From Salpingoeca rosetta (taxonomy: Eukaryota; Protista; Choanoflagellata), in contig JAWQFM010000010.1 in the NCBI GenBank assembly GCA_033442325.1, forward strand, positions 817,727-881,726: a DNA stretch of 64,000 nucleotides, written 5' to 3'. Below, piece after piece: positions 1 through 23,286 of this stretch (positions within the stretch are counted from its first letter, which is position 1; the number at the start of each line of letters is the position of its first letter). The translations under genes and the position numbers were made by a program. Under the pieces are notes generated by a model. That model searched no databases, was not told where the DNA came from, and worked only from the letters and a program-made list of their open reading frames with translations.

Positions 1-941
1 TCGCCTTGAGCGCATCAAGGTCGGCAGCACCAAGCACAATGTCCACAGCTGTCAGGCTCTGTCGCGTCACATCACCAGCAACGAGCTGGCGCGTGTGCTG
101 CACTGCACCGCCATTGACACCATCAGCGTCCTGCACGACAACGCGGGTCACATTCAAAGCAGCCGCCTGCACTGTTTCGTCAAATGTCAGCTGCAGCAGC
201 CCGCCGTTGACGCCGTGGTTCAGGCTCAGGCTGAAGCTCACCAGCGCCGGGGCACGCGTGTCGCTGACATACGTGTGTGCCTGCACGCTGTGGCTGTCCA
301 CAACGGCGTTGTCGCTGGTATCGGTGAGGGCGCCGGCCTCCACCAGCAGCCAGCTTGTGTCGCCGCTCAAGAGCAGCGGCGCCGCATCCTTGATGCTGTT
401 CATGTCGGAGACGTCGAGGTGGATCACCGCCACCCGCGATGCACTCACGCCCTCAAAGTTGCCCAGTGCAGCCACGTCCGGCACAAGCTCCACGCGGCAG
501 GCGCTGCTCAGCCTGTGCGATGCAAAGGCGGTGCTTGCAGCCTGCGTGCCGTTTGATTGCACAACGAGACGGGTCACGTTGATGCTAGCGGTGAGGACGG
601 GCTCGTCAAACGTCAGCGTGAGCTGCCCTTGCTGCATGTCGACCGCCAGGCCCACCAGCGCCGGCGCCACCGTGTCCCCAGCAAATGTGGAGGCGCGCAG
701 GGCGCTTCCGTCCACAACGGGCTGCACGGGGTTGCCCTCCAGGTCAGCAAAGGCTGTGCTGGAGACGGTGAGGTAAGTGGTGTTGCGCGAGGTGGCCAGC
801 TCGGGCCGCAGCTTGAGCGCTGCGAGATCGTCTGCGCCGAGCGACACGACAAGGCGGGTCAGGTTCACCACGCCTGCCGTGCTGCCAACAACAGATGCCG
901 TCGGCGCGCGAAGTGCCACCGACCGGCTCGTGTCCAGGCGC
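1..941. repeat. Intragenic duplication B' (copy of 14341-15281, offset 14340 bp, in frame; probably continues past the left edge)
   Basis: Direct comparison: identical except 6 substitutions seen at 128, 131, 170, 173, 179 and 182, all synonymous third positions in the giant ORF. Identity ends at 941/15281. Confidence 0.95.
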
Positions 942-3900
942 GTACGTGTTGGATGGTGCTGTAAACGAAGCCCTTGCAATGACGCAGGCGCCGCGACTGG
1001 TTCATTCAAATGAAGCGTCAGTTGTTCCTTGACGAAATCCACGTCAAATCCCACAATGCCTGGCCCAGTGGTATCAGGGCCTGCTGCAATTGCAACGGCT
1101 GTGACGTTATCGAATGCATTACCGGCCATATCCAAGTTGTTGGCGGCCAGCGTGATGTTGGGCGTGAGCCCACGCACCAAGATTGCCGCCTGCAACTCTG
1201 CAAATGCCTCAATGTTGAGGTCGCACTCAAAGTGGGTCACGTTGTTCTGGCGCATGCCACTCTGACATGGGTTCTGCGTCGCCTTCCGGCCTCCAAGAGC
1301 GAGCGTGAGTCCCGATGGCAACGTTTGTAGTGGCTCACTAACATGCAACTCAAGCACAGCATCGTTACGTCGCAGGTGGGCAGAGATGAGGCGGGGATTG
1401 GTGGTATCTGGGACAAACAACACTGCCGGCTGCGGCCTCAGTGCGGACACACGCGACACCTGGTTCCCATCCAGTCCCTTTGCAAAATCAGGCGTGAGCG
1501 ATACAAACGAAGAGTCTAAGGAGACGGCGACGCGCTGGGTGACGAGCTTGACAAACTCGAAATGTGTCAACTGCACAACGAGCGACTCATTGGCAGCAGC
1601 CACAACAACGCTGTTTGTCAGCGACACCTCGACGGCGCCGTTAATCAGCGTCAACTGGTCAGGTCGAATCGTGCTGGTATTGAGTGCTTCAGAGAAGCGA
1701 AGGGTGACTTGTTGAGTATTCAGGTCCATCTCAAACTCGACCAAGCTGGGCGAAACCGTGTCGGGCTCAATAATCACTGTGAGCGTTGTCGTTTGGACTG
1801 GATTTGAGCTGACGTCCACCAGTGCGCCTGCAAGAATGCGACACTGAATTGGCCTGAGCTTGGCCTGAAAGACCCACCGTCTCAACAGATTCGCTTCCTG
1901 GAGTGTGAAGGAGTAGACGAACCCGAAGTCAGTCTGCTTGATGGCAGTGATGCTGTGGTTTGCCAACACCAACTCGCCTTGTTGCTCCGCTGCAAGGGAT
2001 ACTGCGGAGATGGCAAGCGCACTCGGAATAGTTAACACAGGCTCAGCCATGACGAGCTCCAGGGAGTCTGTGCTGAGACGGAGATAGATTGCGTCGACCT
2101 CCGGTACGGTCGCGTCTCCCGTGAAATGGCGCACGTCAAGGCTGTACACGGGAACCATGGTATTTGGTGTTAGCTCCTCATCGACAACAGCAGGGGTACG
2201 GCAGCTCAAGGACGAGGCATTCGTGAGACCTATACGACTGAGCTGCATGGCTTGGATGGAGTCTGGGATAATGCTGAGGTTGAATGAGACAGAGCCATCC
2301 GTTGCGATACCGACCTTCACAGGGTGCTGCACGACCAAGCTCACATTGCTGCGAGCCACATAGTCACCAGTGTTGAAAATCACAAACTGCTGTGGTGCAA
2401 GCAGCGAGGATGGTTCGATGGGTGCGGAGAACGTCAGTGCCAACCGCGCGTCGTTGACGCTGAGATCAAAGCTGACCAGCGTGGGAGGCGAGCTCTTGGC
2501 AACGAGAACTTCGGGAAACATGCCCATGGGCACTAAGCTCGGGTTGTCGTAGGCATCTAACACAAACCCTCGCACAAGGTTGATCCAGCACAGATTTTGA
2601 GTTCTGCACAGGCGTGTCTCGTCGAGAAGGCGGCTGAGGGTGCGTGGTCCCAAGGCAAGGACAAGCACGCTGCTGATTGTGGCAGGCGAGGTGGGGTACA
2701 ACTCTAGCCCCCCGAGTTCAACATCTGGTGTGCGATAAAACGAAGCAAAGGTCAGTCGAGAGCTGTTGACAGATGCTGCCTGCACGGGCTCCGAGAACAG
2801 CAATTCAATCACGCCCGACGTGCGGTTTAGCAGTCGAACTTGCAACAACTCAGGTGGTGTGCTGTCAGCGATCACGACCGGGGCCAGCGTGCGCGGAACA
2901 ACAGCATTGCCTGAGGGATCTGAAATCGCCCCAGCAGCGACTGAGACTAGGCAGGCCGATGTGTTTCGGCAAAGCGCCTGTGACTTGATGGGCTCGATAA
3001 GAGAAGCGGAGATGGGCAGAACAATGCTGGTCGCTCTCTCAGTCGTAACATTATTTGGCACCAACTGCTGCATCTCGTGAGCGTCTGCGATTGTAATCTC
3101 TGACACGTTGAGCGTGACAGGATCCACGACTTCACTAAAATCAAGTGTCAGCGTGAAGGCCTCGATGTTGAACTCCGCACCAACAACCCGTGGGCGGCGA
3201 ACATCTGAGCTGACTTGGTCGATGGTTGCATTTGTCACTTGCAGTTCGTTCTGCTCAAAGTCCACAACGTAGGATACCAGGATGATGAAGAAGGTTTGAT
3301 TTGCAGAAGCCTGCAGCTGTGCAGATACGGCGTTGAACTCGGGTGATGTCAGATTGACCGCAACAGCGCGAGGGTTTGAAGCACGAACAAATGGGACGCC
3401 GCTGAGCTGTGTCCGCTGTTGATTCACTTGCACTTCGGCGCTCGAGTCCAATAAGTTCACAAGCACGGGCTCGTCAAACTCCAAGACCACTTGCCTCGCA
3501 CTCAAATCAAGAGAAGCAGTGACCAGTGTCGGGTGTGTCTGATCAAACGCCATGGATGTCGACACAAACACGACGGCGGAAGCGCCGTTGTGATTGAGAT
3601 CCGTCACAAAGTCACTTGCACATGACAGGTATGCGCGGCTGTGCATCCCACGCTGCAACAGCTTCAAGTCGTCAAGAAGCGATGCCGGCAGGGTGCAGGA
3701 CGCTTGGGTACCAGCGGTGTTTGCGAAGGAGCAAGAGATGTCGCCCAGATCCTTGGCTGAAGCTGAGTTTGCGGTGTCAAAGTACACAGCGCATTGGCCT
3801 GGCATCAAAGACGACGTGTCCACGGGTTCTGAGAAGGAGAGGGAGATGAGGCCTGCGCCGTCCATGCTCACGTTGAAGCTGACAAGCTCCGGCCGCACAA

Positions 3901-6900
3901 AGTCGCCGTAGAACGCACCCGCACCGCTATCAGCAGCAACCGCGCGCCCAAGCGGCACCCCAGCTATCCCGTTCCCAAACATGTCCCGCACGCTTCCACC
4001 ATCAACACCCACGCGCGTCGTCGCCGCACTCACACACAGCGCAGCGTCAACCTTCACCGCCTCAAGGTCGCCGTGCCCAAGCTCAACAACAACGCTCGTC
4101 GACGCGTCGCCAGCAACGCCAACAACGCGCGTCCCCGCACGCCCAAGCCGCACAGCGTGCGCACTCGTCCCGTCGCCAGTCAGCACAAGCCCGCTCACAT
4201 TCACGCTGCTCACCCGAACCGTCTCGCTGAAGCCAAGCCAGAGCTCCTCGCTCGTCAGGTTCAGCCGCACCGCCGTCAGCTCCGGGCGCACAACGTCACC
4301 CGCATAGGCGCCCACGCCAAGCCCCGCTCCCACGCCAACAGCGCGCACAGCGTTGCCCACAGCTGCCATGTCAACCACAGCCCCGCGCCCAACAGCAACA
4401 TACGACGTGGCTGCGCTCGACACAAGCGGGTACAGCGCCTTGACCCTGTCCAGCTCCTCGCGCCCAAGCGCAATCACAACCACCGTGCTGTCGCCGGCAC
4501 TGACAACGGTGCTCTCGCCCTCGCGCAGGCGGTACGCAATGGCGTCTGCCGCTGTTCCGTCTGCCTTGCTCTGCAGCACCACGTGGCTCACGTTCACGCT
4601 GCTCACCAGGACCGTCTCGTCGAAGCTCAGGGTGAGGGTGCCTGCGGTCATGTTGAGGGCGGCGCTGCGCACCTGTGGCGCCACGCTGTCTGCAACAAAC
4701 GCATCCACCTGTCGAGCCGTCAGCCCGCTCACAAGCGGCACAACAGGCCTGCCACTTGTGTCGCGAACCAGGCGATCCGACGCAATGACAACGGTTGCAC
4801 CTTGAGTGCGTCCGATTCGAAGGCGTTTGAGCTCGTTCAGCTCATCGTCTGTGGTGAAGAGAGTGACCTCAAATTGGTCCTGTGAGACACTGAAGTTGCT
4901 GTTGACAAGCGAGAGACTCGTTGCTGCAGCAATTGTCGTAGAGAGTGTGAGTTCTGAAGGGTGCACAGAGAGTGGGTCGATGGGCTCAGAAAAGTTCAGC
5001 GTCACTCTTCCGAGACGAGCATCAAACTTGGCGAACGTGAGGCGCGGTCTGTTCACATCGCCCACCACCTCCGCGGCACGCAAGGGCACACGCTGCGTCA
5101 CAATCTCCGCTCGGTTCCCGGCCATGTCATCGATCATCTTTCCTCCATAGTAGCGCAGCTGCACGTTGTCGATGGCCACGCGCCCCGTCTCATTCTTGCT
5201 GAACGTGATACGCATGTTTTCGCCGCTGGCCGCCATTGCTGTGGACACCTCAAACTCCCGGTACACTTGGCTCCAGGAGCCGGTAATGCAGCACGCTTCC
5301 TCCACCGCCCAAGACTGCAGCAAGGTTTTATTGGTCGCAAGGCTGGCATTTAGCCCCGTGAATTCTTCGGCGTCAATGCGGTACCCGCGTGCGGTGTAGA
5401 ACTCAAACGCATACACGCCCGCCTGAACTGTCCAGCTCAGCCCCTGTGTGAGTGAGGCCCCTGGTTCGGCGCCAGAGAGGAAGGCGAAGGCATCACCGAA
5501 AGGTGTCTGTGGAAACGCAGAGGCCTGGCAGCACCCACCTCTGATGCTGTTGCGCATGGTCGTGGGTGCACTGGAGAATGACCAGTGGTTGGCGGGGGCA
5601 AAGTCATCGCCGGGGCTTTCAAAGCCCGCGTTCTGCATAACAACGGGCTCCACGCGCGACGTCAGATAGAGGGTGCCGTTGTCGCGGATCATCCCGGGTC
5701 GGCGCTGCAGCTCAAACGCGTCTGTATCTGTCAGGTTCATGACGAGGTTCCCGGCAGAGTTTGCAACCACGGATCCCCCAGTCAGGGTGTATGACTCGTT
5801 CAGCTGTGGTGGCAGGGACGTGGAGAAGTGAATCGCGCCTGGATTCAAGCTGCTTCCGTTGACAGTCTCTGAGAAGGACAAGAAGAGCTGCTGTGCTGTC
5901 ATGTCAAGGACGAAACTCTGGACCTGTGGTCGTGTTCTGTCGCCAACAAACTCGTCGATGGTCAAGTTGGTGCGACCGTTTGGAGTGTCCACTTGGTCAA
6001 GAACCGCGGCTCCGAGCAAGACCACCTGACAATCACCGTCTCCAACCCTGCACACGCTGGCCTCTTCCTTGAGCAAATTGAGGTCGTTCAGGCCAAGGTT
6101 CACCTGCAAAATGGGGCTGTCGGTTTGGCTGGACGTGGAGTCCAGTGTCAGCGACACCGGGGCCTGTGCCATCGCCTGTTCCGATTGCAACGCAATGCGT
6201 TCAACCTTCAAGGTGTCGGCACGAACAATCTCGTCAAACGTCAGGCGAAGCACTTCGTCGGTCAGATCTAGGGATGCTGACAGCAGCAGTGGGCTTTGTG
6301 TGTCTGGGAAGAGCGTGGACAAGGGCAGCACTGCGGTTGGCACAATGTCGTTGCCGCTGGCATCGGTGATGGACATCTCCAGACAAACAACGGTGACATC
6401 CGTGGCACTGCGGAAGCGCAGGAGCTTCACGTCATCCAGGTCAGGCGTGCTCAGGGAAATGTTGAGTGTGGTTGACAGCACAGTTGTGGTGACTTGGGAA
6501 CGGGAGAGGGACGTGGACATGTTCCATGCCTCCCGCTGCAACAACACACCCGACAGGTTTGTCAGCTGCGGATTGACGACCTCATCAAAGGTGAGCACAA
6601 GGAAGCTGGCGTCCAGGTGAAGCGTGGCGCCGAGCAGGACCGGGGGCTTTGTGTCAACGGTGTACAGGTCGCATACCAGCGGGTCTGCTCGGTCAATGGC
6701 CTGTAGAGCGTTTCCGCTCATATCCAGCACAGCACCAGCGTCAGCAGCCAACACAATGTCGGACACCTGGGGTTCAGGTGGCAGCAGAGCACGAAGGCTG
6801 TTCAGCCAGTCGGCCTCCATCTGCAGCTGAATGAACGTGTTGTTGTCCGAGACCACAAACGCAGGACTGCCGAGATCAAGAAGCTCATCAAAGGTGTTGC

Positions 6901-9900
6901 CGATGTAGATGTGCGTCGGGTCGAGCGAAAGCGCGTGCACCGTCTCGTCAAAGAACAGCGTCACTTGAGCCGACGAAACGTTCAAGGCGAATGAGGTGAG
7001 GCGGGGCCGCACGGCATCCTGCACATATGAGGTGCACGGGAACCCGGCTCGATCGGAAATGCCCACCAACTCGTTGCCAAAGTAGTCTGCCACGCTGGCC
7101 GCGTCCATTGCCAAGAACGTGCTGGGGCGACCAACAGCCAACGTGATACTTTGGGTGACGGCATCCACATCTTCCTGAAGCATGTGCACGCGAAGGACGT
7201 GCATGTCCAAGTTCACGACTGACCCGCCACGCAGGCGACGTGTGGCACGGCAGTCAACGCCACCAGCTCCACAATCCGGTGCGTCAAGGAGGCGGATGCC
7301 AGACACATTCAGGGCGGCGCTGGCAATCGCTTCCGTAAACGTGAGGGTGAGTGTGTTGTTGTCCAGGTTCAGCACAAAGTCCTGTATCTCAGGGGGCACC
7401 GTGTCCGCGGTAACAGTCGCAAACTGGATGGCCGTCGCAGGTGCCGGGTTGGCAAACACATCGTGAACGAATGCGCCTGCAGCGACAATGGCGACAGGGC
7501 CCGGGAATCCGCCACGTTCAGCGTGTTTCTTGAGGCGGTTGGCATCCCTCCAGAGCAAATCAACGTAGACCACAGTGTGGTTGTCAGAGGATACCTCCCC
7601 GCCGTTGATGAGCGTGGCTGGTGACACGCGCGTCCCGTTGAAGTCTTCGGCAGCGGGGCCCACGATGGCACCGTACTGGTTCACACCAGCGTTGTTCACC
7701 GTGTTGAACCACCACCACCACGACTCGTTGTGTGGCGGCTGTGGCCCGAAAACAAGCAGTTGCAGGTCTGTGACAATAAGGCTTCCTGCGTCAACGGTTT
7801 CGTCAAACTGCAGTTGCAGCACGCTTGTGTTCACGTTCAAGTTGGCTTCAACCACCAAGGGCACACGAGAGTCCCTGACGTACACGTTCACTGGCATCGC
7901 GTTGGCCGGCGAACGCGGGGTGACTTTGTTGATGCGACGCAGGGGATCCTGTACCGGCACAAACTCCTCATCCAACAGCGTCATGTCGGAGACGAGGTTC
8001 TCCGGGAAACTCAGATACACGTACTTGCGCGCCTTTGCCAGGAACGCCAAGGCCTTGATGGCATTCAGATCCTCAACACCAAGCGCCACGCCAATAACGG
8101 TGTCGTCCAGCTGCGTTGATGTGGCTGCCCGAAGTGTGTATGCAGCGATGGGCGAGGCTGAGGCTGCCGTCTGCAACGTGAGCAGGGACGTGTTCATGGT
8201 GTCCGCACGCATGGTCTCAGAAAAGGTCAGGGACAGATGGCCACTCGTCATGTTCAGGCTGTACGCAACCAACTCAGGAGGCGTCGTGTCCTGCGTGAAG
8301 TTTGTGGGAAGCATTCCCTGCTCGAGCGTGACAGGCACGACCGGATTTCCGGCCGTGTCCTGCATCATCTGCGAGGAGATGGTCAGGTAGCAAGTGTCTG
8401 GCGAGACAGCAAGTTGCGTGTCCAGCTTCAGCTTGTTCCAGTCACTCGAGGCGTCCGTCAGATATGTGGGGAAGGTCAATTCAAACACGGTGCTGCGGCG
8501 CTGCGTTTGCGCACCCTGCGTGAACGTGAAGCTGCTGCGACTGCTACCTGCAACGCTGGTGTTGTGCGAGTGCAGGGTCACCGTTCCGGGCACGTATGAC
8601 AGCGCCTCAATCACCTCGGAAAAGGTGAAGCGAAGCAGACCCTGATCCACGTCCAGTTCAAATGACAGCAGGTGTGGCGACGTCATGTCGGGCACATAAT
8701 CACTGACTTGCAGTGCCGAGGTGGAAGGAATGGGTTCAATCTGCAGCCCACGCTCGTCTGTCGATATGCGCAACGTGAACCACAAAAAGGTTGTGTTCAC
8801 GTTCTCCGCCAGCCCGCGCAGCTGCTTCAGCTTGTCCGTGTCAGCCTTTGTCAGCACAAACTCAAAGTCGTACCCGTCAATGCTCTCGGAGTATCCCCCG
8901 GTGAGCTGCCGGTGTGGTACCTCTGTCAGCGCGGCGTCAGCGTTGCTGGTGTTCTGCAGCGTCATCTCAGTGTACTGCAGAGAGGACGCTCGGTGTACGT
9001 CATTGAAAAACAGGTGCATGCTCGCGCGCGTCTCCGTAAAGTTCATGTTGAGGGCGAACGAGTCGACGCCCACAAACAAGCCGTCAAATGCATACGAGGT
9101 CGCCTGAAGTGCAGAGCTGCTCTGGATGGGGGCTGCCAGGTTGCCGCTGACGTCGCGAATGACCTGTGCAGTCACAGACATGAATGTCTTAGCCCTCGAG
9201 AAAGCAATCTCGGGTGCGAGCTTGATCGCCCGCTTGTCCACCAGTGACCACTCGTACAAGATTTGGCGGAGATCAAGGCTCTGCCACAGGACGCTGCCGC
9301 CCGTCTGGGTGTAGGTGTCCGCAGATGCACCGTCTGCGCCAGACTGCCACGTAATCTGTGTCAGATCCAGCGTGGTCACATTCACCGCCTCGTTAAAGGT
9401 GAGGTGCACGCGCCCCGTTTGCATGTCCACGGCAAAAGAAAGAAGCTCGGGCGCGATGGCGTCGCGCACATACTTGCTGACCTGCACTGTCTGAGCTGGC
9501 AGCTCGTTGCCGTACATGTCCGAGATGGGCGACGCTGCAAACTCAACGAAGCAGTCGTTGATGCTCGTACACAACCGCGTGTTGTTCTGGAGCAAGCGCA
9601 CGTTGGCGGCGTTGAACCGCAGTGCCACCTGTGCCTCATTCTCTGTGGTGAGCACAGTCCCGCCAGTCACCTTCACGCTCTGCTCTGGATTGGCTGCGCT
9701 GGAGTGGAAGGTGAGGGTCCTTGGGTTCAGCGTGGAAAACCGAACCACCTCGTCGAAGAACACGGTGATGGAGGTGGCGTTCATGTCAACCGTAATGTCC
9801 CAAACATACGGGTGCTGCACGTCGGCGAAGAGCTGCAGCGCCTGGTCCGCGTCATCAAACACGTCCTGCAGAGCTGGGTCCACCCGGTTGCCAAACACGT

Positions 9901-12900
9901 CTTCAATCAACAGGGGTGAAAAGCGCACCCAGCACTGGGAAATCAGCTCACACAGCGTCTCCTCCTGCTTGACGTGGTTCACGTCCGGCACAGAGGGCGT
10001 GATCTGCACCCACGTCTGGTCGGCAGACACGTGGCGGATCGAGGCCGCAGCCGTCCCAACCTTCACCAGCGGCACAGACAAGAAGTCACTGGACCTGTCG
10101 CGGAAGTTGTCGTGAAGCTCCAGCGCTGTGGCGTTGAATGTCGACAGCACCACTGGCTCGTCAAAATGAAGCTCCAGCGTGCCAGAGCTCATGTTGTAGG
10201 AGAAGAAGCGGAGAAGCTGAGGCGCCGTGGTGTCGGGGATGTACACAAATGGCTGTAGCAGCACGCTCGCGCCATCTTGAAACTGAAATGATGCCATGTC
10301 CCTCACGAGCCCGTTGCCAAACCTCAAGTAGCAGTCTGTGGACCCAACGAGGCAGATGGAGAGACGCTTCACCGCATTCAGGTCCACGATGGTCAAGGCA
10401 ACAGACAGCGTTGTACCGTATCCAAAACTCGTGGTGCCGCCGCTGAGCTCTTCCTGTCCAAGGTAGACAGGCACAGTGCTAGAACCGCCGGTGCCAACAA
10501 GGGAAAAGACGGTGGCATTCGCCGAAGTCGCCATGTCCTGGAGCATGATGTGATCAACCAGCAGGGTGCTCCGGTTCACAGGCTCATCAAACGTCAGGTG
10601 CAGTCTGCCAAGATTCATGTCCACGCTTGCTTGCAGCACGGTGGGCGGAACAGCATCCGCCACGTACGTAGCCACTTGCTGTGCAGCCGCAGGCGTAATT
10701 GCTTGCAAACCAAACCCCCGCATGTCTTTCATTAAGGTGGAATCAACACTGAGGTATGTGGAGCTGGCATCAGTGGCAAGGGCGGCAAGTTCCTTGATGC
10801 TGTTGATGTCGTGCACGGACATGTTCACCCGCACAATCGTGGAATTGAACGTGGAGCCAACCGTAAATGTGTCGCGGAGAAGGCTGTCTGGGCCGCCCCA
10901 GGAGAGCCGATAGGACACAGCACCAGCAGCGGTACCATCACGCATGTTTTGCAGCGTCGCCCCTTCAATATCCAAGGTGGCTGCATGAACAACTTCCGAG
11001 AACGTGAAGGAGATAACACCACTCTGGTCCTCCAGACTGATGTCCAAGTCGAAGCTGACAAGTTCCGGCACAGTCGCATCATCAACGAAACTGGCCACTG
11101 CTGCAGCTGCTGCCGACGATACAGGAACGATGGAATTGGAGTTCATGTCGGCGACAAGACTTGCTGAAAAGGAAAGGAAGGTGGTCGACGATGACACGAC
11201 AAGACCAGGCGTGGCAAGAAACTTCAACTGATCCAGGTCTTCGACGGAAGGGACAATGTGCAGCACAGGGGTCGCGACAGTGGTTGTGCTGAATGGTAGA
11301 ATGCTCCCCGTCTGAAGCGTATGTGAAAGAGCGCTAGAGCTGGCAGAAGACTGCAGCACAAGCTGAGACACATGGAAGGTCGATGCATTCACGGGCTCTG
11401 AGAAGGAGAGGGAGATGAGGCCTGCGCCGTCCATGCTCACGTTGAAGCTGACAAGCTCCGGCCGCACAAAGTCGCCGTAGAACGCACCCGCACCGCTATC
11501 AGCAGCAACCGCGCGCCCAAGCGGCACCCCAGCTATCCCGTTCCCAAACATGTCCCGCACGCTTCCACCATCAACACCCACGCGCGTCGTCGCCGCACTC
11601 ACACACAGCGCAGCGTCAACCTTCACCGCCTCAAGGTCGCCGTGCCCAAGCTCAACAACAACGCTCGTCGACGCGTCGCCAGCAACGCCAACAACGCGCG
11701 TCCCCGCACGCCCAAGCCGCACAGCGTGCGCACTCGTCCCGTCGCCAGTCAGCACAAGCCCGCTCACATTCACGCTGCTCACCCGAACCGTCTCGCTGAA
11801 GCCAAGCCAGAGCTCCTCGCTCGTCAGGTTCAGCCGCACCGCCGTCAGCTCCGGGCGCACAACGTCACCCGCATAGGCGCCCACGCCAAGCCCCGCTCCC
11901 ACGCCAACAGCGCGCACAGCGTTGCCCACAGCTGCCATGTCAACCACAGCCCCGCGCCCAACAGCAACATACGACGTGGCTGCGCTCGACACAAGCGGGT
12001 ACAGCGCCTTGACCCTGTCCAGCTCCTCGCGCCCAAGCGCAATCACAACCACCGTGCTGTCGCCGGCACTGACAACGGTGCTCTCGCCCTCGCGCAGGCG
12101 GTACGCAATGGCGTCTGCCGCTGTTCCGTCTGCCTTGCTCTGCAGCACCACGTGGCTCACGTTCACGCTGCTAACCAGGACCGTCTCGTCGAAGCTCAGG
12201 GTGAGGGTGCCTGCGGTCATGTTGAGGGCGGCGCTGCGCACCTGTGGCGCCACGCTGTCTGCAACAAACGCATCCACCTGTCGAGCCGTCAGCCCGCTCA
12301 CAAGCGGCACAACGGCCTGCTCATTCATGTCCCATGCCGCCGCTGCGCTCAGCACCACAAACGTTGTGCTGGCACTGCGCCCAACACCAACCCGCTTCAG
12401 CTCGTTTGCGTCGGCCTCCGCAACCTGCACCACCATCTCCGTGCCCGGATCGGCTGTCACAAGCTGCGACCCGCGCAGCGCAACAGAGGCCCCGTTTCCG
12501 TCAAACGCGCTCTGCAGGAAAATTGCGCTCACGTTCACGCTTTCCGGCGCAATGGGCTCGCTAAACACAAGCGCAAGCTCGAGCGACGACATGTTCACAC
12601 GCGCCTGCACGACCCGCGGCGCCGTTACATCGTCAACAAACTGCTCCGCCCGCAGCACGCCAGACACGGCGTTGTCGTTGCCAGCAGCATCTTGCACTGC
12701 TCCAGCCACAAGCTGCACGAAAGTGGTGTTGACGGCTGTGGCGAGCACTCGATCAGCCTTGATGGCGTGCGCCAGGCTCACCTCAAGCCCAACAACCACC
12801 CGCTTGCTCGTGCCGTTGCTCACGACGGTCGTCTCGGCAAGCAGCTTCTCGCTCACGCCAGCGCCGCCAAGCACGCCCGCGCTTGCAAGTACGCCGCGAC

Positions 12901-15900
12901 TGCCATTCCACGTGCCCGACCGCACAGGCTCGTCAAACACCAGATACACCTCTGCGTCATCAAGGTCAAGGCCAAACCGCATCAGCCGTGGCGCAGTCAC
13001 ATCTGCGCGCACCTCTGCTGCCGCTTGCCGCGTCTCACTGACCCCGTTGCCAAACGTGTCGAGCACAGCCCCACTTGCGAGCCCAATAAACGTGTTGCTG
13101 GTGCTGGTCGCCACATCGTCAGATGCCTTGAGCGCATCCACTGTCGCCTTGTCCACAGAAATAACCACCATCTGCGTTGGCAGGGCGCTCTGAACCACCG
13201 TGCTCGCAGCGAGCTCGCCCACAGCAACACCGGCGCCAGGCACCACAGGCCCGACCGCTGCTGCAGAGGTGCTGCTCACACGCACCCGATCCAGTCGCAC
13301 ACTACCCGTCAGCACAGGCTCATCAAACTCGAGGGTCACCGTGGACGTGTTCATATCCAGCGTGAATCGCTCCAGGGATGGCGCAGCGCTATCTGCCGTA
13401 AACACAGCACACCCAAGTGTTCCGGCATGGGACGGGTTGCCGTTCAGGTCCTCCACAAAGCCAGCACCGACGCTCACCGCGCTGGTGTTGACCGATGTCC
13501 ACACGCCAACCTCCGTCTTGAGCACGTTCAGGTCTGCCGTGCTCAGCGCAATCGTCAGCCACATGCCCGTGCTGTTTGCTGCCTTGCTCGATTCAAGCTG
13601 CAGCAGGCCCGTGCCAACACCAACAGGGACTACCGCGTATCCTGCAGCTGCCACGGCCTCGGCTTGGCTGGCCGTGGTCGCGTCGCCGCTGTGCGCCACG
13701 AGCAGGCTCAGGTTCACGCTGCGGCCGTACGCGGGCTCGTCCAGTCGCAGCTGCAGCTCCCCGTTCATGTCCAGCCGGCACTCCTCGATGCTGGGGCGCG
13801 ACGTATCAAACACAATCCGGTCAACCGTCACGTTTGCGGCGGCAAAGTCGTTGTCGTTGTGGTCCACAACAAAGCCCTCCGGCAATCCCACGCGCACGTC
13901 GCTGCTGTCCGGCAGCCTCCCCAACACCTCCACTGCCCGGTTGAAGTCCGTGTCATACAGCGGCATCGTCACCGTTCGTCCGTCGCTGCCGATGGTGGCG
14001 CTGCTCGGCTCCAGCACATCGTACTTGCCCGTCGCAGTGCTCATAATTCCCACCTTCAGCTGGCTCCCAGTAATCGCCGTTGCGATTGTTTCGTCCAGCC
14101 TGATAGTGACATCCCGACTTTGCAAGTCAATTGTCACGTTTACGACGTTTGAAGCTTGTTCATCCTGGGTGTATGTGGTGATGGGCAGCGGTGTGGCAGT
14201 GCCGTTGATGGCGTTGCCTTGCCAGTCATACACAGCGCCAGCCAGCAGGCGCACAAACGTGTCCGTACTCACAACGTCCACGTCAGCGGTGGTGCCAGCG
14301 ACAATACGCTGCACAATTGTCGGTGTTGCGAGTCCATCCGTCGCCTTGAGCGCATCAAGGTCGGCAGCACCAAGCACAATGTCCACAGCTGTCAGGCTCT
14401 GTCGCGTCACATCACCAGCAACGAGCTGGCGCGTGTGCTGCACTGCACCGCCATTGACACCATCAGCATCTTGCACGACAACGCGGGTCACATTCAAAGC
14501 AGCCGCCTGTACCGTTTCATCGAATGTCAGCTGCAGCAGCCCGCCGTTGACGCCGTGGTTCAGGCTCAGGCTGAAGCTCACCAGCGCCGGGGCACGCGTG
14601 TCGCTGACATACGTGTGTGCCTGCACGCTGTGGCTGTCCACAACGGCGTTGTCGCTGGTATCGGTGAGGGCGCCGGCCTCCACCAGCAGCCAGCTTGTGT
14701 CGCCGCTCAAGAGCAGCGGCGCCGCATCCTTGATGCTGTTCATGTCGGAGACGTCGAGGTGGATCACCGCCACCCGCGATGCACTCACGCCCTCAAAGTT
14801 GCCCAGTGCAGCCACGTCCGGCACAAGCTCCACGCGGCAGGCGCTGCTCAGCCTGTGCGATGCAAAGGCGGTGCTTGCAGCCTGCGTGCCGTTTGATTGC
14901 ACAACGAGACGGGTCACGTTGATGCTAGCGGTGAGGACGGGCTCGTCAAACGTCAGCGTGAGCTGCCCTTGCTGCATGTCGACCGCCAGGCCCACCAGCG
15001 CCGGCGCCACCGTGTCCCCAGCAAATGTGGAGGCGCGCAGGGCGCTTCCGTCCACAACGGGCTGCACGGGGTTGCCCTCCAGGTCAGCAAAGGCTGTGCT
15101 GGAGACGGTGAGGTAAGTGGTGTTGCGCGAGGTGGCCAGCTCGGGCCGCAGCTTGAGCGCTGCGAGATCGTCTGCGCCGAGCGACACGACAAGGCGGGTC
15201 AGGTTCACCACGCCTGCCGTGCTGCCAACAACAGATGCCGTCGGCGCGCGAAGTGCCACCGACCGGCTCGTGTCCAGGCGCCGCTTCGTTTGGAACTCCT
15301 GCAGTGTGATGTTCGTCACGTCGACGGTCATGCCATTGATCGGCTCCGACACGAGCAGTTCAAGTCTTGCCCTGTCCACATTGAGGGAAAATCCCGTGAT
15401 CACTGGCGAGACCGCGTCCTGCAACAGCCGCAACTGAACCACCTGGGCAGCATTTGCATTGCTCGCCGTATCGTTGAATGTGCCCGCGCTCAGGTTCAAT
15501 GAGACGGTATGACCGTTCAGCTGCGCAAGGGCAATCTCATACCCGGTTTCCCTAGTGAGTGAAAACTGTGTTGTTGTCTTGTTGACCCGAATTGGTAACG
15601 CGTTGCTCTCGACCGCAATGACTTGGCTTGAGTTCAACACAACAAACGTTGCCCTGGCAACTGCAATGCTGAGGAGGTCAATTGGCTCGTCCGTGGTGAT
15701 GATGAGGGTCTGGAAGTCTGAGAGATCGAATGTGGCCGCAAAGACCACTGGTGCACGGACGTCCTGCCCCACGACAGCCACCGACAGCGTGCGTGCTGGC
15801 ATTGGGCGTCCAAACGAGTCCTGCACGAAAGCTGCGGTTGTCTGAAGCTTCGGCACAGCGGCCCCCATCAGGTACAGCTTGACGAAGTTCAACGTGTCCA

Positions 15901-18900
15901 CACTCAGCTTCATCTTGACTGCGTGGGTGGACGTTGCTGAGACGACGACATCGCTGGCGGTGAGTTGTTTGCTGTATTGGCCGAGTTGGAGCGTCGCCTC
16001 CTCCTGCAGGACTGAGGTGAAGCCCAAGACATCTGTGCCTTCCACAATGAGGAACCCCGATGTCATGTTGAGGGTCGCACTGGTGAGGATGGGCACGGAC
16101 GTATCCGCAACAACGTCAATGCTGGTCAATGAAGTCGCAGCAAGTGCATTGCCAGCTGTGTCGTTTGCTGCTGCTCGTGGCAGCTGCAAGTCAAAACGAG
16201 CTGTCGTGTCGCCCTCTGCAAGGTCAAAGGCGGCCTTGATTTGGTGAACAGAGTCCTCAGTCCAAGCGTAGACAAGGGTCATGGAGAGCGCGTCCACGAC
16301 GGCCTCAAACTGCAATTGCAGGGGCAGCGACAAGGACTGATTTGACAGTGTTGCCGTGAATGTCTGTACGCCACGCACTGGCTCTGAGAAGACGAGCTGG
16401 AGCTTGTTGTTCTCGGCGTCGAGTGCTGCTGAGGCGGCGCGGGGAGGCAGCTGGTCTGCCTGGAATGGCACTGCCGCTATCACCGCAGGTTGAACGGCGG
16501 ACACGACCAGCTGGTTTGGCTGCGCCGCCATGTCCTGGACCAGGCCCTCAGGGGCGGCGATGAACGCCGTACTGGCGTCATCAAACAGAGCGGGCGTGGC
16601 CTTGAGTTCAAGCGCATCTTCTTGGCTGAGAACAACAGTCGCATCCAGGTACCCGGCGAAAACTTGGCCACCTGTGAGCGTGTAAGACGGGCACCCTAGG
16701 GAGGCGTTGCTGCAGCCAAGCAGCGTGAAGCCCGCGGCAAGGAAAGGCCGTACTGGCTCGTTAAACGACAGGCCGATGCGAAGGCTGGACATGTTGGCGG
16801 ATGCACTCAGCAAGACGGGCGGCACCACGTCTGGCACGAACAGGACGGGAAGCAAGGGTTCCGCCACAGTGGTTTCGCTGGGGTTGCCTGCAATGTCCAC
16901 GACGGCTCCATCCGTCAACACAACGTGGCAGTTGCCAGGCGTGGTGCAAAGCCCATCCTGGGCCTTGATGAGGTTCAAGTTGTCAGGGTCAAGGCTGACG
17001 TCGAGCACGAGGCCTTCGTCGCTGGCGGAGAAGTTGGCAGACACCACAGCACATGGGCAGTTGCCAAGGCTGTCCGTGACCAGGACCATGGTGAGGTTAT
17101 TGGCGCGCACGGGCTCGTCCGCCTGCAGGACCACGCTGCCGGAGGTCATGTTCCAGGTCAGCACTTCCAAGCCTCCGGGCGGCGTGGTATCTGGGGTGAT
17201 GGCTGAGACGGTGGCGTTTGTGGACAGGGGAAGCGCCAGTCCCGCCATGTCCTGGATGAGAGCAGACGGCAGAGCCGCGCCGGGGTCTGCAGAAACGAGT
17301 GTGCAGGGTGTGGCTGGCAACTGCGCACACGACCTGCTAAGCTTCAGCGCATGCAGGTCCGAGAGCGCCAGGGTCCACGCAATTGTGTCAAACGCAGGCT
17401 GAGCGACCACTCCTTCCAGCGCTGGTGCAAACTGCAGTGTTGCTGGCGAGGGCGCAAGTGATTGTGAAACGAGACGCAGGCCGCTCGGGTTGAAGGAGGT
17501 AAGGTTGACGCCTTCGCTGAACTGGACGCGAAGTTGGCCAGCGTTGATGTTGAGCGTCACGTTGAGGATGGCGGGAGCGGTGATGTCTGGGGACCAGGAC
17601 GCGACCGCAAGTGGGTCGTTGGCGGGAATATCGCGCATGATGTTGTTGGCAAAGTCGCGGCCAATGGGGATGGAGATGGCGGCCCGGACGTACTCGTGCT
17701 CCCAGCTGAGGTAGCAGGTGCTCACAGATGCGCAGATGCCAAGCGTGAGGGCGTCGAAGCGGTCTGCTTCCTCGAAGGAAACAACCAATGTGCGGCTGGA
17801 CGACTCGTTCACCAGAAGGCTTGCTGAATCGAGGACCTTCGTGTCTGCATCAACGGCGCCACTGGTAGGGCTCGCAAGCAGCCTGATGCGCGACGCCTGG
17901 ATGGTGCTGAGCTGCACAACCTCGGAGATGTTGAGGGTGATGCGGCGAGTGTCAAGGTCGAGTGTCCAGCTGGTCACGCGGGGAGCCGTTGCGTCGCCAA
18001 TGAAGACGCTGATGTTGAAGGGGCTGGGTGGGGAGATGATTTCAATCTCGTTGGAAGCAACATCTGCCACAAACTTGCCCGTGGAGAAGAGGAGGGCATT
18101 TGCTGCGCTGGTGGCGAGGGACGGTCGCGCTTTGATGACGTCTGTGTCGGGTCTTCCCAGGACGATCGACACGGTCTGGTTGTACCGGCTGGTGCTCTCG
18201 TGCCAAGGGTGGACGCGTGCTGCCCGCAGAGCGTACGTGAAGTTGTCGGATGGGTCCACGAGGCCGAGCAGTAGCGGCTGCATTGTGGAGATGTTGACAA
18301 CCTCGTTGAACGTCAGGTGAAGCATGGAGGCATCCATATCCAGCAGCGCCTCGGACACGCGGGGCGGCGTCAAATCAGCCGTCCAGTTTGCCACGCGAAT
18401 GGCATTTGCATCAAGCACGGGATTGCCAAACACGTCGGCAATGGCGTTATCTTCGAGCAGCAGGTGCGTGCTATTTGGGTCTTTGCCAAGGCGCCGCTTC
18501 AGCCGCAGATCTTGCACATCCTCTTCCGTCAGCTGCACCTCAATCTGATCCGAGTTGCTGTTGATTTCCCCCCCTGAAGCCATGTCCAGCCAGTGCACAT
18601 AAGAGATCATGGATGAGTGGTTGCATGGTTATGTGTTTGTGTTCGTGTTCGTGGTTGCGTGTGCGCACGTGTTCATGGTTGCGGTTGCGTGTTGAGAAAG
18701 CATGTGAGCTTCAGCACCCAAAGGTGCTGAGGTATGTTGAGAAATTGGGTGGGATGTGTGTTTTGGTGTGAAGCGCTGCAGCAAGCGAGGATACAGGACA
18801 TGGTAGGCTGGTTTCCAATAATGCATGTAGGTGTGTTGTGATGTGCACTTTTGTTGCTCGTGGGGCTGGCAAGCGAAGCTTGCAAGCAAACCAGCTGAGC

Positions 18901-21900
18901 AAGACACGTGTGCAGAAGTGGCTTACGTGGTGGGAGGACAAAGACGATTGTTTGTGTACTTGTGACGTCAATGGGTGATGATGCCGAGGCAAGGTCAAGG
19001 CTCAAAGTGAAGGTGCCCGGCTGATCCTGGGTGACGTTTGCAAACGCACGGCCGCGGTGCAGGGTGTATGGCGTGGAGGAGAGCAAAGCACCCGCCTGCG
19101 ACACCTTGAAGATGAAGGAGGTGTTTGCGCTCGTTGCCACGTTGTCGTACTGGTCGCGAGCCTGTACAGCGGCTTGGATGGTCCGGTTGACGAAACCGTC
19201 GGTGGGGTCGATAATGACGAGGCTGCGAACGCGACCGGGGGAAACAAGAGCTTGGCGTGGTGCTGAAACCGCAAAGCCAAGCGAGTTCTGCACGGAAAAC
19301 TGACGGATGCCTGGGGTCGGCGTGGTAAACACAGCGACGCCGCTGCCATTCTGGATGGTCACAGAGAGGGTCTGCTCCACCACCGTTCCGTCGGATGCCT
19401 CGAGGTTGACGACGCCCACGGTTGCCGCAAGGCCGCGTGCATTCGGCTGCTGGTTGCCGTGTTGGTCCAACGCGTCCACGCGCAGAACTGCGGCTTCGTC
19501 AACGGTGAAGTTGGCAACGGGGTTGAGCGAGATTGTGGTGACGGCACCGGGTGCAAGGGAGAACTGTGTGAGGGAGGACGGAAGACCACGCGAACTCCCT
19601 GTTGCACGGTACGCGCCAGCGGTGGTCAGCGACAGCTGAAACATGGCCTGGCCACCCATGGCTGTCAGCTGAGCCGAGGTGTTTTGCGGACCAAAGACGT
19701 CCAAGGCAAGTGTCCTGTTGAAGAAGTCAACCAAGTTGTCGTACGCGTCGAGTGCAGATACTACCACGTATGTGTCTCCATCTGCAACGGGTGTTCCCAT
19801 CACAGTTGTGCTCAACTGTGTCGCATTGCCTGCCATGTGCGTATGTGTGTGTGTTTGTTTGTATGTGGGATGAGCGGGTTCACGCGGCAGCGTTCACTTG
19901 GGGTTGCTGGTTCACGTGGGGTTTGTGTCCAAGGGCGCGCCGTTGGGATTCTCGCCACAAATGCATGCATGACAGGCGCGCGGCTTCGCAGGTACATGTG
20001 TCTTATGTCACATCGCGTGGAACACAGGTGATGTGCTTGTGTGGTGCAGCAAGAGTACGCACGACACACATACACACACAGGAAGGTTCACACTTCGTGT
20101 TGCAGCAATAGCGATGCCAATGACACCATACCTGGCTGGATAGTTACATCAATGGTGGCATCTAAGGAAGAGGCAAGACCAAAGGATGCAGCAATCTGGT
20201 AGGTGCCGGCCGTTGTGAGCACAAAGGTCGTTGCCTGCTGGCCGCTGTTGAGCAACAGAGACTGTGGAAGGACGGGAGCCACGACACTCGAGGTGGCGCT
20301 GAGCACAAACGCATCCGACGCATTGACAATGGTGTTGTTGAACTGGTCGACAGCGCGAGCGGCGACGTTTAGCGCGTTGCCTGCGACTGCCGTTGGTGCA
20401 GCGACCAACTCCGTCCTGTGCCACACATCTGCGGTAATTTGGATTTCAACGAGAGAACATCACAAGCTTGGCATGAGACTGCGTGATACATTGAAGCAAA
20501 GTACCAAGAGTACAAGGGTCAACAGTGTGTTACCCCACAGCTGCGCATCGGTCGTGCAACCCTCCATTCACGTAAGACTCAACAAACATACGCACAAGCA
20601 CACACGCACAAGCACACACGCACAAGCACACACGCGCACGGTGCATCACCTCGACTATCACCGCCATCATGCACCATTACACCATACACCACACACATTC
20701 CACTGGTGGAGGCCACTTCGCACACCACACACAACTGCAAAAGTGTTACTGCTACGGACCTGGCTTAACAGTCAGTGACTGCTGTCCAGCAGCCACAACG
20801 CCGCCGGGAAGCGTTTCGTCAAGAGTCACGGTGATCACCTCTGCTGCTGTGGGTGTTGCTGTTGCCGAACCAACGCCATTCACAAGCGTAACCGGCACGA
20901 CGAAGCTGCCCAGGCTGGCGCTGGCTACCTGGAGACTGACGGTGCTGTCGAGGATGGCGGTGTTCTCAAACTGATCTACAGCGCGGATGTCAGCTCTAAC
21001 GTCCTGTCCGGCAATCACTGTGCTTGGAACGCTCGAGAACTCAACACCGACAGGGCCGTCTGACGCAAGCCCATGCCCAAAGTGACGGTGATGACACCAA
21101 TGTGATGAGTCCAAGACGATGGTAGTGGGGTGGACATGCGCAGTTGTGTGTATTTGTGTACTTGTACAATTGTGTGTGTGCGTGTGTGCGTGTGTGTGCG
21201 AACACTTGCAACATTCGGTCATCACGTGCGACACGAGTAAAACATGGGGTTCCATGCCTTTGGTTCAACTCGAGAACTCAACTGCATACTATACAGCCGC
21301 TGCATACACAAGCAAACACACACGCACACGCACAAGCACACACACATACACACACACACACACACGAGAACCACACTTGGAATTCACACCTGCGACGAAG
21401 AGGATTGAGGTTGTGTTGGATGTGCTGATGCCGGTGTGCAGACGATCGAGAAATGACAGGGTGATTCGCTCAGCGACGTTGTCTCGGATTCGAATCGTGC
21501 CTTCGCCGGCAAAGACGCTCACATCGCCTTCGCCAGCGGCAGCACCATCCAGCGCAACGTACACGGTGGTGTCCAGTGGAAGCAGTTGGCCCGCTCGGTT
21601 CACAACGGCAATGTCAATTGCCTGACTGGTACCCACGACAGCTTGCGTGGGCCAAGACGAAAACTCAAAGTTGGCGTCGCGGTAAAACGTCACGACGAGG
21701 GAGTCCGTGGGCTGGCTTGAGACGTCGCCCGTGGTCAGCTGCACATCGATCGAGCACACCTGCGGCGTGTTGCTGTGGATGGTGATGTCCAGCACGCCCC
21801 CACCAAAAGAAGAGGTGGTGGTGGTTGTCAGCGTCGTGCAGTTGGTGTCGATGCTTGCACCTCGCGCCTCGTGCGTGGCTGCATTGCCAAAGGCATCAAA

Positions 21901-22124: not shown

Positions 22125-23286
22125 GTGNNNNNNNNNNNNNNNNNNNNNNNNNNNNNNNNNNNNNNNNNNNNNNNNNNNNNNNNNNNNNNNNNNNNNNNNN
22201 NNNNNNNNNNNNNNNNNNNNNNNNNNNGTGTGTGTGTGTGTGTGTGTGTGTGTCTGGCAGTGCTTCTGGCATCACCACCGTTGCCACCATCCTCCCGCCG
22301 CCTTGGTTTCGCACACACGACATTTACCTGGCGTGAATGTGATGAGCTGCACTGCGGGGCCCTGGATTGGTGCTGTGGCGATGACAAGGACTTGCACTGT
22401 CTCTGACACGGTCGTGACAATGGGTACGTCCCTTTCCCCGTTGGAGATTACTACGGAGGAGGGCATGCTCAATGAGGAGGCGTTGCTCCGAAGCGTGACG
22501 GTGAATGGATCTGCCACAAGGTTTCCGAGGTAGTCGATGCCTTGCAGGTGCAGTTGTTGCGTGGTGTTGACGATGGCGGTATCCGGGAGAGGCGACACAA
22601 TGATGGTGTCAAGCGGCGCTGGGAGCCACGTCAGCTCCAGCGTCGCGGTGTTCATGTCGAGGCCCGTACCGAAATCATCTCGCGCAAATACAGTGACGGT
22701 GCTCGAGGACAGCGTGCGCAGCAGCACTGTGGCCTGCCCAACTTGCAGCTGAACCGTCTGCGCCGTCGTGACATCGCCTGTGTCGTCGATGACGATGCTG
22801 CCGAAGAAGGTCCTGTCTCGATCGCCATTTGCATCGGCCGCAGTCACCGTGACGAGGATGTCCTCGCCTACTTCCGCCTCGTTGGAGATGGTGGTCAGAA
22901 GAATCGACGTGGCTGTGCACATGAAGGGAGGAGAAGGGAATGTGAAAAGTAAATGAGGGTTTGGCGATGGTGGTGCGTGCGTGTGTGTGTGTGTGTGTGG
23001 CATGTGGTGTGCATGTGCGTGTGCGTGTGCGTGTGCGTGCTTTGTGCGTGCTTTGTGCGTGCGTGCGTGCGTGCGTGCTTGTGTGCACATGCTTTTCTGT
23101 GCGCGCCTGTGTGTGGGTGCATGTCTGTGCGTGTGTTTGCGTGCAAAAGACACATGTGCATGGCGACAACTGAGCGAGCACAGAAATCACACCTGCTGCC
23201 GCATGGCTGGAGTGAGCAGCCAACGTCAACGTGAGGGATAACAGCAGAGTGTACGCTGCGAAGGCGCGCATGTGCATGTGCGCCAT
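1..23286 (-). CDS. Giant secreted/cell-surface repeat protein (>7,100 aa within window, 3' end beyond left edge): signal peptide, ~9 Ig-like modules, ~45 tandem bacterial-Ig-like repeats; probable adhesin or extracellular-matrix protein
   Basis: Exons assembled by hand from GT-AG junctions that keep frame: 23286-23193 (MAHMHMRAFAAYTLLLSLTLTLAAHSSHAAA, signal-peptide-like), 22912-22328, 22007-21390, 21059-20760, 20428-20132, 19829-18927, 18573-<1. The last exon reads RGEINSNSDQIEVQLTEEDVQDLRLKRRLG... at 18.5 kb and ...SLTAVDIVLGAADLDALKA at position 2 in the same frame. The ORF track lists no minus-strand ORF in this frame between 1 and 18.6 kb, which is consistent with no internal stop. The repeat motif D-x-x-x-P-x-L-x-x-F-x-L-D-M...L-x-L-T-F-x-E-P-V...D-L-x-x-L-K...D-x-x-G-N recurs about every 350-420 bp. 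Confidence 0.9.
3821..4744. repeat. Intragenic duplication A' (copy of 11390-12313, offset 7569 bp, in frame)
   Basis: The ORF track gives identical translations at 3981/11550 and 4276/11845. Only 2 differences seen (3827/11396 and 4604/12173), both synonymous. Confidence 0.95.
5150..5645 (-). other. CBM4/9/22-like (galactose-binding-domain fold) module inserted inside one repeat of the giant protein
   Basis: Translation VVMQNAGFESPGDDFAPANHWSF...ASLTQGLSWTVQAGVYAFEFY...GSWSQVYREFEV...MRITFSKNETGRVAIDNVQLRYY has the N-terminal NxGFE and C-terminal IDNV.L hallmarks of these beta-sandwich modules. Confidence 0.7.
11390..12313. repeat. Intragenic duplication A (partner of 3821-4744)
   Basis: Near-identical ~924 bp block, see A'. 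Confidence 0.95.
14341..15281. repeat. Intragenic duplication B (partner of 1-941)
   Basis: Near-identical block of at least 941 bp, see B'. Confidence 0.95.
22128..22227. other. Assembly gap (100 N) inside a (GT)n tract in intron 2 of the giant gene
   Basis: Run of n flanked by GT repeats. Confidence 0.99.

Follow-up and report, generated by a model that had tools for sequence, protein, structure and literature searches.

Proteins built from domain repeats are known to expand by duplicating several domains at once in the middle of the array, as seen in the super-repeats of nebulin and titin (Bjorklund et al. 2006, PMC1553488). Among bacterial surface proteins, the Periscope proteins are adhesins of variable length in which highly identical repeats follow one another in tandem (Whelan et al. 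2021, PMC8201768). Here we place in this context a giant gene of the choanoflagellate Salpingoeca rosetta, which is partly contained in a window of 64,000 nucleotides from contig JAWQFM010000010.1 (C10 in what follows). The minus strand of this window carries a long frame free of stop codons that encloses both pairs of duplicated blocks seen in the window (Table 1). The gene extends ~10 kb further to the left, to C10:807760, crossing a run of 4,282 Ns, and its intronless array totals ~65 to 75 tandem Ig-like domains of ~125 residues each. Pairwise amino acid identity among the 63 visible domains has a median of 24% and a 99th percentile of 43%, and at the DNA level the other repeats match only in 41-nt patches when the window is compared with itself by blastn, in keeping with an earlier reading of the sequence alone that called these repeats highly diverged. 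Ancient, diverged sequence makes up 90% of the array, and identical sequence is confined to a few dispersed cassettes. A word-based protein database search found no annotated protein of 3,415 to 10,866 residues corresponding to the gene itself, and the ~28-kb gene is either unannotated, annotated piecewise, or annotated outside this size range. In a local tblastn of selected loci of this genome, S. rosetta PTSG_12324 matched at 100%.

As a whole protein, the array scores 30.4 and 41.5 bits against Pfam Big_5 (PF13205; cut-off, 23.6), single stretches alone all falling below the cut-off, and a precomputed PF13205 assignment is present on several homologues. The predicted model of a single domain (pLDDT 95.6) finds its top match among 48,161 PDB chains in SbsC domain 258-358 (2ra1; Z 9.1, rmsd 2.7 Å, 101 residues), and SbsC in 4uj6 aligns similarly (Z 8.9, rmsd 2.6 Å over 101 residues). 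These structural matches were obtained by the VIA wide search; a Foldseek search of the domain model against the PDB gave no significant match. The domain is thus predicted to adopt an Ig-like β-sandwich superposable on an S-layer Ig domain, and the gene would encode a giant extracellular protein whose anciently diverged Ig-like domains are of the Big_5/SbsC type known from bacteria.

The blastn comparison of the window with itself recovered both of the in-frame block pairs that the sequence-only reading had proposed. Blocks A and A' differ by 2 mismatches at an offset of 7569, and blocks B and B' align without gaps at 99.36% identity (6 mismatches) at an offset of 14340, both offsets being multiples of 3. 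These dispersed blocks are the only strong self-matches (>900 bp), and there is no tandem run of near-identical repeats. The larger cassette S' has a C-terminal portion of 2,040 bp that recurs beyond the left edge of the window, at C10:811405-813444, with 99.9% identity (2 differences) and reaching the gap edge. Block A is therefore present in three copies, one of them left of the window, block B in only two in the assembly, and the middle of S' (13416-14340) occurs a single time in the assembly. With 99.4 to 99.9% identity versus a median of 24% at the amino acid level, and no DNA similarity elsewhere, the blocks are indeed young compared with the remaining array. Three extensions of this picture were rejected. 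A longer match of block A, to 4752/12320, requires a gap and is a chance extension; an older large segmental duplication, suggested by a 1,900-residue blastp match at 51%, reduces to ~680 identical residues on a ~24% background; and a special kinship of the block-flanking domains with the donor flanks (39-47% for domains 17/35, 20/38, and 20/54) reflects the shared portion of these domains.

Table 1. Features of the giant S. rosetta gene, in window positions unless a contig is named
Feature	Position	Strand	Description
In-window stop-free frame	2..18628	-	6,209 codons, 48 Big_5/SbsC-like Ig domains
Cassette S'	11376..15281	-	Contiguous upstream copy; 3,906 bp, 1,302 codons; domain 10 state 46 to domain 20 state 32; ends recur at window 1-941 and C10:811405-813444
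Block B'	14341..15281	-	N-terminal end of S'
C-terminal 2,040 bp of S'	11376..13415	-	Domains 15-19 and start of domain 20
Block A'	11390..12313	-	Last 310 codons of S'
Block A	3821..4744	-	2.4-domain cassette in its third copy; joined to unique flanks in chimeric domains 35 and 38
Block B	1..941	-	Probable N-terminal end of downstream copy S''; cut by the N run at base 1
B/B' difference patch	128..182	-	All six differences, third-position synonymous transitions

The first base of the window is also the first base after the 4,282-N run, and on either side the run is bordered by sequence belonging to copies of S', the two bordering points being 925 bp apart when placed on S'. Block B, which adjoins the unique domain 46 at 941/942, and the block left of the window probably represent opposite ends of a single ~3.9-kb duplicate (S'') that repeats the ten domains of 11376-15281 in direct orientation, and the last 310 codons of that ten-domain cassette are present a third time as block A. 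The N run presumably conceals the middle of S'', which is on no other contig of the assembly; it exceeds the length needed for a faithful S'' by 3,357 bp and may hide further copies or something else. In the coding direction, the order is S' (B'...A'), unique domains, A, unique domains, and S'' (B, gap, ...A''). What had been taken for swapped order is thus an effect of truncation by the window edge and the assembly gap, and the argument for module shuffling built on it is not supported; in its place stands one large direct duplicate, with its 2.4-domain end copied once more. Even on this account a minimum of two copy events is required, and the cassettes are not all of the ~2-3 repeats first proposed, with S spanning ~ten domains and A 2.4. 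Simple tandem duplication by one unequal crossover was rejected, since unique domains spanning 6.6 kb and >5 kb lie between the copies, which are not adjacent and have two junctions each instead of one.

The junctions fall directly after FSEPV (HMM state 27), a few residues past the motif equivalent to DxxGN (state 109), and in mid-domain (state 46), all three as previously placed. At each junction the two copies are at an identical HMM state, and the resulting chimeric domains have their full length. The two flanks of a block do not complement each other, the left flank of S ending at state 45 and the right flank resuming at state 33, with 108 and 28 as the corresponding states for A. Resident sequence was therefore replaced, which excludes simple insertion. 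Four independent C-side junctions lie within states 26-32 of 125 (P ~5e-4), and the C-side junctions in this gene and its paralogues all fall at the FxEPV motif, the coding region of which is the peak of nucleotide identity among the repeats (0.57 versus a background of ~0.3). On the N side the junctions are more scattered (states 109, 46, ~125, and ~10). In-register junctions as such could come from selection for foldable domains alone, and the recipient sequences that preceded the events are lost, along with any record of microhomology at the exchange points.

The few differences between copies have been filtered by selection. Eight of nine are synonymous, compared with 27% expected by chance (P = 2e-4), and there are no indels. 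The six differences between B and B' all lie within 55 of 941 bp, with none in the other 886 bp (clustering P ~1e-6). This bias and this clustering indicate that the copies are separate sequences that are translated, under selection, and mosaic in their history. A search for a third, diverged source of the 55-bp patch gave none; the assembly contains only two copies of B, and the next-best protein matches are ≤43% identical.

These features bear on an assembly artefact, in which the reads of one true copy were reused two or three times, or unique segments were misordered, so that copy number and architecture would be unreal. The S. rosetta contigs were assembled from 400-800-nt Sanger/454 reads (PMC4054682), with Hi-C used later solely for re-scaffolding (PMC10232365), and a gap at a 3.9-kb repeat of 99.7% identity is therefore expected; the N run most likely represents a scaffold gap in this assembly. 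The blocks (0.9 to >2 kb) are longer than these reads, and the assembler's gap falls exactly here, within the gene and with repeats on both sides. A paralogous locus at C13:85-95 kb has near-identical blocks of a similar kind and is riddled with gaps, and sponge homologues assembled from long reads are free of such blocks. We nevertheless consider an artefact unlikely. Each copy has its own unique, in-frame, and in-register junctions, with A bordered by three different C-side flanks, and such distinct junctions are not obtainable from one copy in a haploid genome. Differences that are synonymous in eight of nine cases and devoid of indels are unlike sequencing error, 454 error especially, and other orders through the repeat graph retain the same domain content. 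The gap nonetheless marks a mis-resolved spot of the reference genome inside a ~28-kb gene, and the gene model, domain count, and expression estimate for this locus are provisional.

Recent, motif-guided intragenic gene conversion or recombination is in our view the best reading, with a probability of roughly 0.7 as the whole explanation. Very recent nonallelic, in-register recombination between repeats of one gene would have produced two copies of cassette S (~ten domains, 3.9 kb) in direct orientation and a third copy of the 2.4 domains at its end (A, 0.93 kb). This would have proceeded by gene conversion or template switching, or equivalently by paired unequal crossovers, with the donor tract overwriting domains of the recipient and an intact chimeric domain being left at either end. 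Exchange would occur preferentially at the few codons common to all repeats, above all the FxEPV-coding stretch. The locus displays the marks expected of gene conversion, namely, a near-identical tract amid diverged repeats, in-register ends with replacement, and mosaic divergence. The sequence-only reading had spoken of ongoing ectopic recombination or gene conversion; a homology-guided, conversion-like process does fit best, given the replaced flanks and the 55-bp patch, and we infer that such events may continue today. If so, an ancient, diverged domain array in a close relative of animals still undergoes partial remodeling through in-register cassette copying, and there is a slight but consistent indication that a conserved structural motif may double as a preferred site of exchange.

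The diverged repeats share too little DNA identity to support classical homologous recombination, and one N-side junction is at the poorly conserved mid-domain state 46. Both observations would suit nonhomologous segmental duplications with random breakpoints, arising by replication slippage or by MMBIR without register guidance, from which selection kept the in-frame, in-register products, with no conversion involved. We regard this origin as quite improbable, as noncomplementary flanks would require each event to include a matching in-register deletion as well, all four C-side junctions lie within seven states at the most conserved codons, and six synonymous differences clustered amid identical sequence point to repeated exchange.

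The paralogous giant genes, where the sequence-only reading had suggested looking for the same cassettes, contain in-frame blocks of the same kind on other contigs. These include a 1,763-bp block with 2 differences on C16, a 449-bp block on C1, and blocks of 92-99.8% identity shared between loci on C13. Among giant homologues in other organisms, an internal block of this sort is present in only 1 of 38 (P0007), where it is tandem, with a period of 630 residues and 92% identity; this count is to be read in light of short-read assemblies being biased against such blocks. The giant Ig-repeat genes of S. rosetta might often swap multidomain cassettes within and between loci, with the FxEPV-coding stretch as a built-in hot spot, and so form a eukaryotic counterpart of the variation in length and composition of bacterial adhesins. 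We consider this broad generalization improbable; were it true, isolates or clonal lines would be expected to show structural polymorphism. A dedicated variation system, in which frequent and selected cassette exchange within and between these genes diversifies or resizes a surface protein in the manner of adhesin or antigen variation in microbes, is very doubtful, for although blocks of several ages (92-99.9%) occur at at least four family loci and junctions share a hot spot at one motif, we find no silent donor arrays and no recombinase or other dedicated element nearby, the differences indicate purifying rather than diversifying selection, and the bulk of the array is old and stable.

Compared with known systems, the individual domains resemble the Big_5/SbsC bacterial Ig-like domains, with a whole-protein Big_5 score above the cut-off and SbsC as the nearest structure. 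They differ in their length of ~125 residues with an additional helix, in that no single stretch passes Pfam, and in their host, a choanoflagellate with giant relatives that include sponge proteins. As in Periscope proteins, a surface protein would carry a long rod of Ig-like repeats altered by recombination between repeats; however, Periscope repeats are tandem and highly identical, whereas S. rosetta has a few dispersed identical cassettes, in a eukaryotic host and as seen in a single assembly. Classification as a Periscope-type protein was rejected, the blastn self-matches lacking a tandem high-identity run, and the likeness to variable microbial adhesins that the sequence-only reading had drawn is one of analogy. 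With ectopic gene conversion and concerted evolution the locus shares near-identical tracts, abrupt in-register ends, a retained donor, and patchy divergence in a diverged context, but donor and recipient share only ~24% amino acid identity here, far below the classical requirement, and a few conserved codons could at most have served as guide. Finally, as in the expansions described by Bjorklund et al., cassettes of 2.4 and ~ten domains were copied in frame inside an array of the same family and not at its ends. The S. rosetta copies differ in being dispersed rather than tandem, in starting and ending within domains at conserved motifs, and in replacing resident sequence, and the intronless array offers no exons to shuffle. 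Cassette copying of this sort is a known kind of event that belongs to the ordinary evolution of repeat genes rather than a new mechanism.

Comparison of window bases 1 to 19000 with themselves by blastn returned exactly two strong off-diagonal matches. Block B (1–941) matches B' (14341–15281) at 99.36% identity with 6 mismatches and no gaps, and 3821–4752 pairs with 11390–12320, with a gap-free core (3821–4744, block A; 11390–12313, A') that harbors 2 mismatches. The offsets, 14340 for B/B' and 7569 for A/A', are each divisible by three, and both block pairs share one minus-strand stop-free frame of 6,209 codons that runs from 18628 to window base 2. Besides these two blocks, inter-repeat matches consist of 41-nt patches with 85 to 88% identity. 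The duplicated in-frame blocks described in a sequence-only reading of the window are confirmed, with correct coordinates and offsets and all other repeats diverged as claimed; the interpretation placed on them there is partly supported.

A domain HMM made from the gene's own repeats identifies 63 contiguous visible domains of ~125 aa, of which 48 lie inside the window, with a median domain-pair identity of 24% and a 99th percentile of 43%. No further domains were found upstream of ~18733 or farther than ~9,985 bp from the window's left edge. Pfam Big_5 (bacterial Ig-like) scores weakly and at the whole-protein level only. The AlphaFold model of domain 18, based on an alignment of 42 sister domains, has a pLDDT of 95.6; its top match among 48,161 PDB representatives is an Ig-like domain of SbsC (S-layer; Z = 9.1, rmsd of 2.7 Å over 101 residues), and Foldseek alone gave no significant match for this model. 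The sole non-Ig module seen in the array is an HpiC1-like insert. Giant relatives that share 25 to 29% identity over 1,500 residues include sponge proteins, proteins of many other assemblies, and S. rosetta PTSG_12324, and the closest named ones are from the sponges Corticium candelabrum (LOC134194325) and Ephydatia muelleri (EMCRGX_G018704). A collection of 5.8 billion proteins, in which the paralogue PTSG_12324 is present, contains no protein of 3,415 to 10,866 aa identical to the 6,209-codon frame, and the giant gene may be unannotated or split. Upstream of the point where the open frame begins, at a distance of ~3.5 kb, a 100-N assembly gap (window 22128–22227) could conceal the gene's promoter or 5' exons.

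Features of the giant gene and of related arrays (window coordinates unless a contig or protein is named; U1, U3, U4, and U6 are unique segments around the cassettes)
Feature	Location	Strand	Details
S' (upstream cassette copy)	15281 to 11376	−	3,906 bp; from state 46 in domain 10 through state 32 in domain 20
A	4744 to 3821	−	between U3 and U4
S'' (downstream cassette copy)	941 to 1, the N run, and the 2,040 bp adjoining it on the left	−	between U4 and U6
HpiC1-like insert (CBM-like fold)	5060–5623	−	188 aa, non-repeat; between domains 34 and 35; Pfam E = 3e-7
N run	C10:813445–817726 (window −4281 to 0)		4,282 N; inside the giant gene's frame; ends one base before the window
C16 in-frame duplicate	C16:434477–436239 and 443978–445740		1,763 bp, 2 differences, offset 9,501
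C1 in-frame duplicate	C1:1868594–1869042 and 1870142–1870590		449 bp, offset 1,548
C13 copies	C13:85001–95000 versus C13:339–344 kb		first locus gap-riddled, with 92–99.8% copies of PTSG_12324 N-terminal domains plus internal tandem copies
P0007 tandem duplicate	residues 2106–2677 and 2736–3307		6,201 aa, ENA assembly; 630-aa period, 92%

The window covers C10:817727–881726. With 40 kb left of the window added to the analysis, the minus-strand frame stays open to C10:807760, for a total of 9,532 codons including an N run. In this extended region, window 11376–13415 matches C10:811405–813444 over 2,040 bp with 2 mismatches (blastn) up to the edge of the N run; because this match extends past A', A' is the mere tail of a longer repeat, and block A is present in three copies. 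In the upstream copy, the gap edges fall at 13415 and 14341, 925 bp apart, and the intervening 925 bp occurs once in the whole assembly. The simplest architecture would read, in the coding direction, U1–S'–U3–A–U4–S''–U6, that is, one direct ~ten-domain duplicate with a middle unplaced by the assembler, and with its last 310 codons present a third time. The arrangement B...A...A'...B', previously taken as swapped, is a product of the window starting mid-S''; at least two copy events are still required. The N run exceeds the length needed for a faithful S'' by 3,357 bp, which reflects either a poor gap estimate or extra hidden sequence, possibly with more copies, and the true protein length is therefore ~8,400 to ~9,530 residues. 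The assembly could have placed the unique inter-repeat segments in the wrong order; alternative repeat-graph paths leave the domain content unchanged.

The published S. rosetta assembly was built by Newbler and ARACHNE from 454 (~400 nt) and Sanger reads with 3- to 40-kb mate pairs (PMC4054682), and the later chromosome-scale version contains the same contigs, merely re-scaffolded by Hi-C (PMC10232365); every read is shorter than the duplicated blocks. Both edges of the 4,282-N run lie inside near-identical repeat copies, and further irregular N runs (408, 8,786, 174, 1,031, and 803) are found nearby and in paralogous loci. The 4,282-N run is probably an original scaffold gap of estimated size caused by the flanking repeats, and gene models that cross it are provisional. 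Judged from three sequence features, the blocks are real with a probability of roughly 85%. Each copy joins unique sequence by its own junction: past FSEPV, A diverges from both A' and A'' (the A copy at the S'' end), A' and A'' remain identical for five codons more and then part, and B and B' differ in their N-side flanks. In a haploid clone, a single copy with three different flanks is impossible, which argues for real copies. Nine substitutions and no indels distinguish the copies; since eight of the nine are synonymous, at third positions, compared with 27% expected for random substitutions in the same codons (P = 2e-4), the differences are evolutionary and filtered by purifying selection rather than errors, with both copies constrained at the protein level. 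All six B/B' differences fall inside 55 bp (window 128–182) of the 941 bp (P ~1e-6), a mosaic that suggests either repeated exchange or a third donor, since lost or still hidden.

All junctions are in register with the repeat, as had been proposed, in that the first or last shared residue occupies the same HMM state (positions 1–125 of the domain model) in both copies. The resulting chimeric domains 35, 38, 46, and 54 are full length, with HMM scores like those of ordinary domains. Simple tandem duplication is not what the locus shows, and simple insertion into one domain is ruled out by non-complementary flanks: unique sequence flanking S stops at state 45 on the left and picks up at state 33 on the right, and around A, these states are 108 and 28. 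Resident sequence was therefore replaced in register. We infer that the replacement came about either through a single conversion or template switch for each cassette or through a pair of in-register unequal crossovers. Domain-pair identities reveal no special relatedness of the flanking domains to the flanks of the donor, and thus no older duplication supplied the homology.

Six-frame searches of the same genome reveal paralogous giant arrays on C1 (9,148-codon frame) and C16 (4,918 codons) and at three C13 loci, with PTSG_12324 (3,781 aa) corresponding to C13 at 100% identity over its full length. These paralogous arrays hold similar in-frame blocks on C16, C1, and C13. The C16 junctions fall after DxxGN and at FTEPV, the C1 duplicate has its C-side junction at FDEP, and several C13 blocks, some inside one locus and others shared across loci, have 92 to 99.8% identity; C13:85001–95000 represents either an exchange of cassettes between loci or a duplicate gene that was badly assembled. 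Four independent C-side junctions map to states 27 (C10-A), 32 (C10-S), 28 (C16), and 26 (C1), at or just past FxEPV, the motif ending strand B; four junctions would fall within 7 of 125 states by chance with a probability of ~5e-4, for a window set post hoc. Nucleotide identity of non-duplicate repeats is highest at FxEPV (0.57 versus a background of ~0.3), with smaller peaks at DxTxP (0.53) and DxxGN (0.51). The N-side junctions are more scattered (states 109, 46, ~125, and ~10). This pattern, from a small sample of four C-side junctions, fits exchange guided by the few codons common to all repeats; the exchange is perhaps polar, and selection favoring chimeras that can fold may play a part.

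In other organisms, P0007 alone among 38 giant homologues harbors an internal block with at least 85% identity, and this block is tandem; the comparison is limited by short-read assemblies, which would break at such repeats. S. rosetta may be unusually active in cassette copying, or its old assembly may be unusually prone to error at this locus. Ectopic gene conversion between paralogous repeats is a classical process. Domain arrays usually grow by mid-array multi-domain duplications (Bjorklund et al. 2006, PMC1553488), and bacterial Periscope proteins change length via recombination among near-identical tandem repeats (PMC8201768). The locus shares logic with all three but is not of the Periscope type, because most of the S. 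rosetta array is ancient and its identical cassettes are dispersed. The event belongs to a known kind, of which this locus is a further example, and its breakpoints within domains, at a conserved motif, are a modest addition to the known picture.
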